DNA of 64,000 bases from Glycera tridactyla (GCA_965644265.1 OZ286474.1:40486001-40550000); one strand, 5' to 3'; numbered from the stretch's first letter, positions 9,657 to 64,000 are shown. Notes: generated by a model not told the origin, from the sequence alone. Translations and numbers: made by a program.

Positions 9657-9742
9657 ATGTTTTTGCGCGTCATCATGGTGTCCTCACCAGTGTTCGCTCT
9701 TCTTGTTCTGGCTGCTTTTCCGTTGACGACCATGGCTTCGAC
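9657..9742 (+). CDS. Exon 1: signal peptide
   Basis: [28 protein letters not shown](T); hydrophobic core, T-M-A cleavage pattern; donor AC|GTAAGA phase 2 matches exon 2; alternative start at ATG 9675. Confidence 0.85.

Positions 9743-64000: not shown

Follow-up and report, generated by a model that had tools for sequence, protein, structure and literature searches.

Polymeric VWD proteins are the building material of mucus, clots, adhesives, and Reissner's fiber, and their early history is debated. The VWD-C8-TIL superfamily comprises the gel-forming mucins, hemocytin/hemolectin, SCO-spondin, and VWF, and C-terminal dimerization is a requirement of true gel-forming polymers. Lang et al. described in 2016 invertebrate mucin-like proteins with three VWD-C8-TIL units and F5_F8 domains. 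They noted the F5_F8 domains as a hallmark of Lophotrochozoa, near which CysD is inserted, and placed the invertebrate mucins nearest to the SCO-spondins; the layout that they gave for protostomes is "3 + 2 VWD" with F5/8C between (PMC4948705). Further, limpet pedal mucus contains P-vulgata_3, a protein of SCO-spondin-like type (PMC7333891), SCO-spondin expression has been reported in the annelid Owenia (PMC5543218), and a gel-forming mucin of Ciona is a mosaic of 30 domains (PMC6109156).

We analyzed a 64,000-nucleotide stretch of DNA from Glycera tridactyla, which, at its full length, will be referred to as the window, and conclude that at most the 5′ two-thirds of one gene lie within it. 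The product is probably a secreted, acidic, Cys-rich glycoprotein of the VWD-C8-TIL superfamily that consists of a polymerization-type head, a bead block, and PTS (Pro/Thr/Ser) sequence and belongs to a lineage of its own. A first-pass annotation of this DNA had put the locus forward as the best candidate for an undescribed system, which goes too far, because proteins with three VWD-C8-TIL units and F5_F8 domains (PMC4948705) and a SCO-spondin-like limpet mucus protein (PMC7333891) are described. The class is already known; this lineage and its bead block appear to be without description in the literature searched, and the distinct part is the conserved lineage and its TIL-VWC bead block. The picture of a hybrid of SCO-spondin, hemolectin, and mucin designs was accurate in that the gene has features in common with SCO-spondin, hemocytin, and mucins.

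Like the window gene, an uncharacterized protein of the crinoid Anneissia japonica (P0015, XP_033114357; its name, "SCO-spondin-like," is automatic) opens with a signal peptide and continues with an EMI-like stretch, five EGFs, and D1-D2-D'-D3; its model ends at 1,580 residues, confining the comparison to D3 and before. The Owenia fusiformis protein CAH1788460 (P0082) is likewise secreted and Cys-rich, with EGF, three VWD-C8-TIL units, PTS stretches, and F5/8 type C, but it carries three CysD (WxxW) domains between its PTS stretches, is without the TIL-VWC bead block, and falls in another clade; with its PTS, three CysD, and F5/8C, it fits the 2016 description exactly. Vertebrate SCO-spondin and limpet P-vulgata_3 are giant secreted proteins that share with the window gene three VWD with C8 and TIL, further TIL, VWC, and F5/8C. 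They form fibers or gels. Where SCO-spondin has LDLa arrays and many TSP1, the window has neither, but one degenerate LDLa-like Cys module. Insect/arthropod hemocytin/hemolectin resembles the window gene in its type of N-terminal EGFs, in D1-D2-D'-D3, and in having F5/8C downstream, but its F5/8C lies close behind D3 and is followed by two more VWD units, whereas a bead block of ~1,100 residues lies between D3 and F5/8C in the window gene. The D1-D2-D'-D3 head is also shared with vertebrate MUC2, MUC5AC, MUC5B, and MUC6 and with VWF; the vertebrate gel-forming mucins and VWF have GDPH in some VWD domains, as in VWD3 of the window gene, but, unlike it, are without N-terminal EGFs. The place taken by CysD within long PTS in mucins, and by VWA domains in VWF, is occupied in the window gene by short linkers, TIL/VWC beads, and discoidin-type domains.

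Gene model and D1-D2-D'-D3 head

On the + strand, an ATG at 9657 opens a predicted model that runs to 64000 in 64 exons with 9,087 coding bases (3,029 codons), is stop-free, and is open at its 3′ end. Its introns are GT..AG throughout (median intron, 626 nt; median exon, 141 nt). The exon chain was built by our own program, which weighs codon usage by log-odds, scores GT/AG splice sites, and keeps track of phase, with the 5′ and 3′ ends corrected by hand; the model rests on genomic sequence and relatives, and its splicing is predicted. The window is animal DNA with a G+C content of ~42%, and six-frame reading revealed numerous short Cys-rich open stretches on the + strand from ~13 kb on. Upstream bases 1-9600 and the minus strand gave no convincing gene, only repeats. 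In the gene-free region 5′ of the start codon, we noted a tandem array at 3204-3821 (5.2 copies of a 118-bp unit, 93% matches) and a (TTGG)n-type microsatellite at 5990-6435 (~106 copies or, alternatively, a 44-bp period); intronic microsatellites of the D2 region are (CT)44 at 23293-23380 and (GA)n at 25100-25230. The features of the N-terminal part of the gene and the two assembly gaps are as follows.

9657..9742, + strand: exon 1, with ATG and signal peptide (86 nt, GTAAG donor); aligns with the signal peptide of P0015
9845..9990, no strand: assembly gap 1, within intron 1 (9743-13333)
13334..14390, + strand: EMI-like N-terminal stretch (HWC...CCSGWxGxxC) on two exons; motif only; conserved in P0015
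14391..16661, + strand: five EGF-like domains of the teneurin/PEAR1L/VWDE type (Pfam EGF_2, EGF, EGF_PEAR1L, EGF_TEN)
17298..21061, + strand: D1 assembly, with VWD1, C8-1, TIL1, and E1 (Pfam VWD, C8, TIL; colinear with P0015)
21068..25891, + strand: D2 assembly, with VWD2, C8-2, TIL2, and E2 (Pfam VWD, C8, TIL; local VWC/E HMM)
26464..27430, + strand: D', with TIL' and E' (Pfam TIL E 5e-9; local E/VWC HMM iE 4e-11)
27431..32211, + strand: D3 assembly, with VWD3, C8-3, TIL3, and E3 (Pfam VWD, C8, TIL)
56495..56732, no strand: assembly gap 2, within intron 56252-56776 (exon ends 56251 / 56777)

The 86 nt of exon 1 together with the first base of exon 2 (13334) preserve the frame; exon 1 thus joins exon 2 in frame, and gap 1 is therefore intronic. 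Further, the crinoid protein aligns from its signal peptide straight into the next exon, without a missing block at this gap. On the flanks of gap 2, a VWC motif continues over the junction (..TYR|PGDTW..), and the ortholog on an ENA contig (see below) has an intron at the same codon, with two exons and zero extra residues between them. An exon hidden in either gap is possible, but nothing calls for one. As for the splicing, a 294-residue fragment (P0076), encoded by an unbroken ORF on a JGI contig, is 58% identical to the model over a stretch spanning three model splice junctions and validates the junctions that it spans, and three shorter fragments terminate precisely at a model exon end.

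Pfam was run exon by exon, and the joined model served for local comparisons. EGF-type matches were obtained on four exons, followed in order by VWD, C8, TIL; VWD, C8, TIL; TIL; and VWD, C8, TIL. We conclude that the head has the domain order of the D1-D2-D'-D3 arrangement, with three N-terminal VWD-C8-TIL units. The alignments with P0015 and an amphioxus "mucin-2-like" protein (P0017) are colinear with it. The earlier claim of one giant secreted protein with a polymerization-type head is supported; it had made no mention of the EMI-like stretch or the five EGFs. The Pfam EMI model gave no match on the window exons or in the relatives; the window EGFs align with those of P0015, P0017, P0045, and a firefly protein (P0167). 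The best solved-structure matches are MUC5B, MUC5AC, VWF, and MUC2. A GDPH motif is present in VWD3 at 27449-27460 and is retained in the orthologs P0076 and L004 (a compact Logan contig); ~47 of the fetched relatives have GDPH at this position of their best-matching VWD. In D3, VWF C1099/MUC2 C1088 is an intermolecular-disulfide cysteine, and the second such cysteine is VWF C1142/MUC2 C1130. For the C8-3 exon, the best alignment is with the third C8 domain in MUC2 and in VWF, and its extra Cys (DCECLC) is the equivalent of VWF C1099/MUC2 C1088; for the second cysteine, a solved-structure search with the TIL3 exon gave no match and no alignment.

Bead block, linkers, and start of the PTS exon

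After the head, the first-pass annotation had described about 1500 residues of beads on Thr linkers, and we indeed find such a region at residues 1503-2986 (~1,480 residues), made up of TIL, VWC, Cys-rich, and beta-sandwich modules. Exon-level Pfam was mostly blank over the bead exons because introns split the modules, and we therefore turned to orthologs with unbroken ORFs and to local HMMs, for which 167 fetched relatives supplied the TIL and VWC/E domains. The local TIL HMM recovered the four head TILs and, of the 6 bead TILs claimed, 3 clearly (iE ~1e-6) and 2 weakly; the local VWC/E HMM recovered the head E modules and, against a claim of about 8, 6 clear and 2 weak VWC-type beads. By these matches, therefore, most beads are D'-like TIL-VWC pairs or lone VWC modules, with several assignments resting on weak scores. 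The features of this region are listed below; the orthologous loci cited in the list are set out in the next section.

32212..33063, + strand: linker 1 and Cys module "orphan 1" (LDLa-like C..CDG..EC...NDE..C)
33699..36514, + strand: linker 2 and TIL + VWC pair A (local TIL iE 1.4e-6, VWC iE 4.7e-7; weak Pfam TIL/VWC on exons)
36515..38286, + strand: linker 3 and beta-rich module "disc1"; 33% identical block with L004, from this feature to TIL E
39503..41603, + strand: linker 4 and TIL + VWC pair B (local TIL iE 5e-6; colinear in the ENA locus, L004, and P0332)
41604..45754, + strand: linkers 5 and 6 and VWC modules C and D (local VWC iE 4e-6 and 6e-3; order kept in L004 and P0332)
48037..48887, + strand: linker 7 and TIL + E pair E (local TIL iE 3e-6; 42% identity to the ENA locus, E 1e-14)
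48888..50521, + strand: linker 8 (35 residues), with a 42-nt exon and a 15-nt microexon at 50507-50521 (strong splice sites; predicted)
51007..54273, + strand: TIL-like + VWC pair F, linker 9, and VWC G (Pfam VWC E 4e-7 on exon 54118-54273; local VWC HMM); matches in the ENA locus and P0332
55432..56941, + strand: linker 10 and TIL-like + VWC pair H (local VWC iE 7e-6; both exons in the ENA locus)
58030..58182, + strand: Cys module "orphan 2" (13 Cys in 51 residues; 48% identity to the ENA locus, E 2e-9)
58831..61475, + strand: linker 11 and F5/8 type C (discoidin) "disc2" on three exons (Pfam F5_F8_type_C E 8e-5 on the middle exon)
61878..63428, + strand: linker 12 and "disc3" on three exons (z 3.9 versus disc2)
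63873..64000, + strand: start of the PTS exon, in frame with the preceding exon and cut by the window end

Both of the claimed orphan Cys modules are present and conserved in the ENA locus. For orphan 1, identity is 54% with L004 and 47% with the ENA locus; the window copy gave no Pfam match, and the L004 copy gave a weak match to Ldl_recept_a (E 0.027). Orphan 2 lies at the same place in JGI contig L020 and had no Pfam match. The claim of three discoidin-like modules held for two of them. Disc2, which scores z 7.6 against the F5/8C domain of the Owenia protein (itself Pfam E 1e-19), is an F5/8 type C domain. Disc3 had no Pfam match, but an AF2 model of its one-exon copy in the ENA locus (pLDDT 63, core 60-82) had retinoschisin, factor VIII C2, CBM32, and neuropilin b1 as its top matches (Foldseek E 1e-3 to 2e-2), every one a discoidin, factor VIII C2, CBM32, or neuropilin b1 fold, and disc3 is thus predicted, via this ortholog copy, to be discoidin-like by fold. 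Disc1 was left without a family match: there was no Pfam match, and the AF2 model of the L004 copy (pLDDT 49) was too poor for a fold search. It has a weak link to a repeated beta-module of L020, for whose alignment with the F5/8C group hhalign gives a probability of 53%.

The Thr-rich linkers number 12, where at least 13 had been counted, and are 6-35 residues long; the PTS start comes in addition, and together they form the PTS (mucin) feature within the window. The stereotyped TTTP-C junction described for most linker ends is seen as 9 T-x-T-P-C junctions among the 12 linkers. The PTS exon begins at the window end, as had been stated. Inside linker 8, the predicted microexon (..TTSN) has a polypyrimidine-CAG acceptor and a G|GTGAGT donor, both strong. 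The whole-model pI of 4.2 agrees with the description of the protein as acidic; the 26 sequons observed are close to the ~24.5 expected from composition, so there is no sequon enrichment, and the statement that N-x-S/T sequons are many fails. The model has no W..W (WxxW), in line with the earlier remark on CysD, and C.W[ST].W is absent from all window frames, as are TSP1 (WSxWSxC, CSxTCG), strict LDLa, CysD, and cystine-knot motifs. The contrast that had been drawn with the long PTS blocks of vertebrates accordingly survives with respect to CysD and is weaker with respect to PTS, as the ENA ortholog has PTS exons of 230 to 1,481 residues.

Orthologous loci

To find orthologous loci, we started from P0076 and used a word search followed by contig look-ups. 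An intron-bearing ENA contig (ERZ26222911, ctg1019281, 219 kb) gave 25 colinear tblastn matches with model residues 93-2665 at 31-60% identity, which cover orphan 1, TIL B, E B, TIL E, VWC F, pair H, and orphan 2. Orphan 2 is followed there by F5/8C exons, an exon of the disc3 type, and a PTS exon with 230 residues and, further on, by a 3.9-kb super-repeat of discoidin-like exons and PTS exons; the PTS exons, of 230, 1,008, 1,481, and >841 residues, alternate with discoidin-like domains. The 3′ end of the gene (D4, VWC, cystine knot) was not reached in the ~70 kb of this contig that was walked (60 kb to 131 kb), and precomputed Pfam marks show no VWD in the downstream 48 kb of the ortholog. 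Compact Logan contigs (L003-L005) hold the head and a 1,272-residue unbroken ORF with TIL, VWC, and two F5/8C matches; ORF residues 711-1262 are 33% identical to model residues 1709-2213, and head and beads share one contig in L004. JGI contigs L020/L021 hold P0332 and a 4,511-residue ORF with the order TIL-VWC block, pair H, orphan 2, F5/8C, and disc3, followed by at least 19 tandem "beta-module + Thr linker" units.

The bead block was found under no name in the databases searched. A word search with the L004 bead block over 5.8 billion proteins, which covers word-sharing proteins of 700-2,226 residues, returned only itself and P0332; metagenome scans with bead exons gave no match; and a profile search collapsed onto the EGF columns, returning VWDE proteins. 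By the colinear orthologous loci, the bead block is real, conserved, and colinear in four organisms. We also note that a Thr linker and a VWC that matches window VWC C are separated in L004, at 7390-7500 (ORF residues ~1005-1040), by a clear LDLa-like module (..CDKRNDCSDMSDEKDC). This module is absent from the window gene at 42339-42409, implying gain or loss of a module within the conserved block.

Lineage placement and alternative explanations

A representative search with the VWD3 exon returned 1,507 relatives, among which there was no full-length protein above ~45% identity, and the model was compared by local BLAST with 150 listed proteins. A characterized one-to-one ortholog with the same architecture, which the first-pass annotation had named as one finding that would overturn its proposal, did not turn up in the relatives searched. 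Among the 150 matches listed, the nearest named relative is the crinoid protein, which is 36% identical over 1,387 residues in one stretch and shares the whole N-terminus of the window gene, i.e. the signal peptide, the H[WF]C ... CC[SD]GW.G..C stretch, and the five EGFs. The amphioxus protein (34% over 1,393 residues), the Owenia protein (33% over 1,305 residues), the firefly hemolectin-type protein (31% over 1,325 residues), and an insect hemocytin from Achroia (P0035; 29% over 1,441 residues) are further relatives. In a maximum-likelihood tree of the D'D3 region alone (28 rows, midpoint root, thin sampling), the window gene groups with P0076, the Logan ortholog, and, as sister, the Anneissia protein (support 96/92). 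Separate clades are formed by the SCO-spondins that bear LDLa/TSP1, as judged by counting these motifs (94/94), by the hemocytins together with Owenia, snail, Saccoglossus, and Diadema proteins (98/99, the window gene outside), and by the chordate mucins (92/91). In AU tests, a sister relation of the window clade to the SCO-spondins was not rejected (p-AU 0.12), and union with the hemocytin clade was borderline (p-AU 0.043), the groups having been named after the tree was seen. The tree gives support for these clades and not for their deep branching order. We judge it likely, jointly with the one-gene explanation given above, that the window gene, its three orthologs, and the crinoid protein form a distinct conserved lineage that is not part of the SCO-spondin, hemocytin/Owenia, or chordate-mucin clade.

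The EMI-like N-terminal motif followed by three VWD units, the one LDLa-like Cys module directly after D3, the presence of F5/8C, TIL, and VWC, which are also part of SCO-spondin, and the "SCO-spondin-like" label given by NCBI to the nearest named relative would agree with orthology to vertebrate SCO-spondin, i.e. with a neural/radial-glia-like secretion (Reissner-type substance) whose LDLa and TSP1 arrays were lost or never gained. The sister relation left standing by the AU test and the SCO-spondin expression in Owenia (PMC5543218) also lean this way. We nevertheless regard this explanation as quite unlikely, as the window, read in all frames, has neither TSP1 nor strict LDLa motifs, Pfam EMI is without a match, the free tree puts the window gene outside the clade of LDLa/TSP1-bearing SCO-spondins, and the ENA ortholog runs into mucin-type PTS exons. 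Those PTS exons, which exceed 1,000 residues, likewise speak against a clotting or immune adhesive lectin of coelomocytes of the hemocytin/hemolectin type, with its "3 + 2 VWD with F5/8C between," as do the hemocytin/Owenia clade that forms without the window gene, the borderline rejection of the joined tree, with its groups named in hindsight, and the F5/8C domain lying ~1,100 residues of TIL-VWC beads past D3. This explanation is unlikely, even though the hemocytins and the firefly hemolectin-type protein have EGFs of the same kind and D1-D3 at 29-31% identity, F5/8C domains do follow the head, and the layout is the one described for protostomes (PMC4948705).

It is very unlikely that the model fuses two or more neighboring genes (one for the head, another for the beads) or is partly a pseudogene. 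Several mini-exons of 15-42 nt are predicted solely from splice signals in genomic sequence, but most introns split modules, modules and linkers share exons, and the last D3 exon already includes linker 1. Moreover, the 9,087 nt are stop-free, and head and beads lie colinearly on one strand in the ENA locus and on one contig in the compact locus L004.

A single gene for a polymerization-type glycoprotein is the explanation that we favor. Its signal peptide would lead to secretion, and the head would, as in mucins and VWF, drive disulfide-linked multimerization through D3 along the secretory pathway. The linkers rich in Thr may be O-glycosylated, stiff tethers that join disulfide-knotted beads, the discoidin-type domains may bind glycans or lipids, and the GDPH of VWD3 could undergo Asp-Pro self-cleavage, as in FCGBP and D4 of MUC2 and MUC5AC. 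By analogy with the ENA ortholog, the gene presumably runs on into long PTS domains, so the product would be a hydrated extracellular gel, adhesive, or fiber scaffold; roles in mucus, adhesive, tube, or Reissner-like fiber are candidates only.

If it is true that a separate conserved lineage exists in a protostome and a crinoid, this adds a branch to the history of polymeric VWD proteins and provides a natural mucin in which TIL-VWC beads and discoidin-type modules serve as spacers instead of CysD. As a more tentative suggestion, which we hold possible rather than probable, the window gene, its three orthologs, and the crinoid protein may stand for an ancient fourth lineage of bilaterian polymer glycoproteins with D1-D3, next to the SCO-spondins, the hemocytins/invertebrate mucins, and the chordate mucins. 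This lineage would have at its center a conserved block of TIL-VWC beads, together with beta-modules derived from discoidin on short, O-glycosylated tethers, in place of CysD-punctuated PTS, and it might be a major unannotated polymer of marine-invertebrate mucus, adhesive, or tube matrix. In this animal, the window gene is a candidate for a gene that encodes a structural component of mucus, adhesive, or tube matrix, and gene models of this family are largely absent from annotated databases.

Two of the orthologous loci are repetitive. The ENA super-repeat of ~3.9 kb consists of two groups of discoidin-like exons and a PTS exon (L008, L012, L018, and L019; ~86-131 kb), and identical 145-residue exon products occur in 9 places on four contigs of this assembly, which could be alleles, paralogs, or several individuals. 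The JGI ortholog (L020 8400-16529; P0332 residues 1-1400) has at least 28 tandem beta-modules of ~120 residues (C.K.MKD.G..P ... ACL), each trailed by a Thr-rich linker of 40-60 residues, a mucin domain of beads rather than plain PTS.
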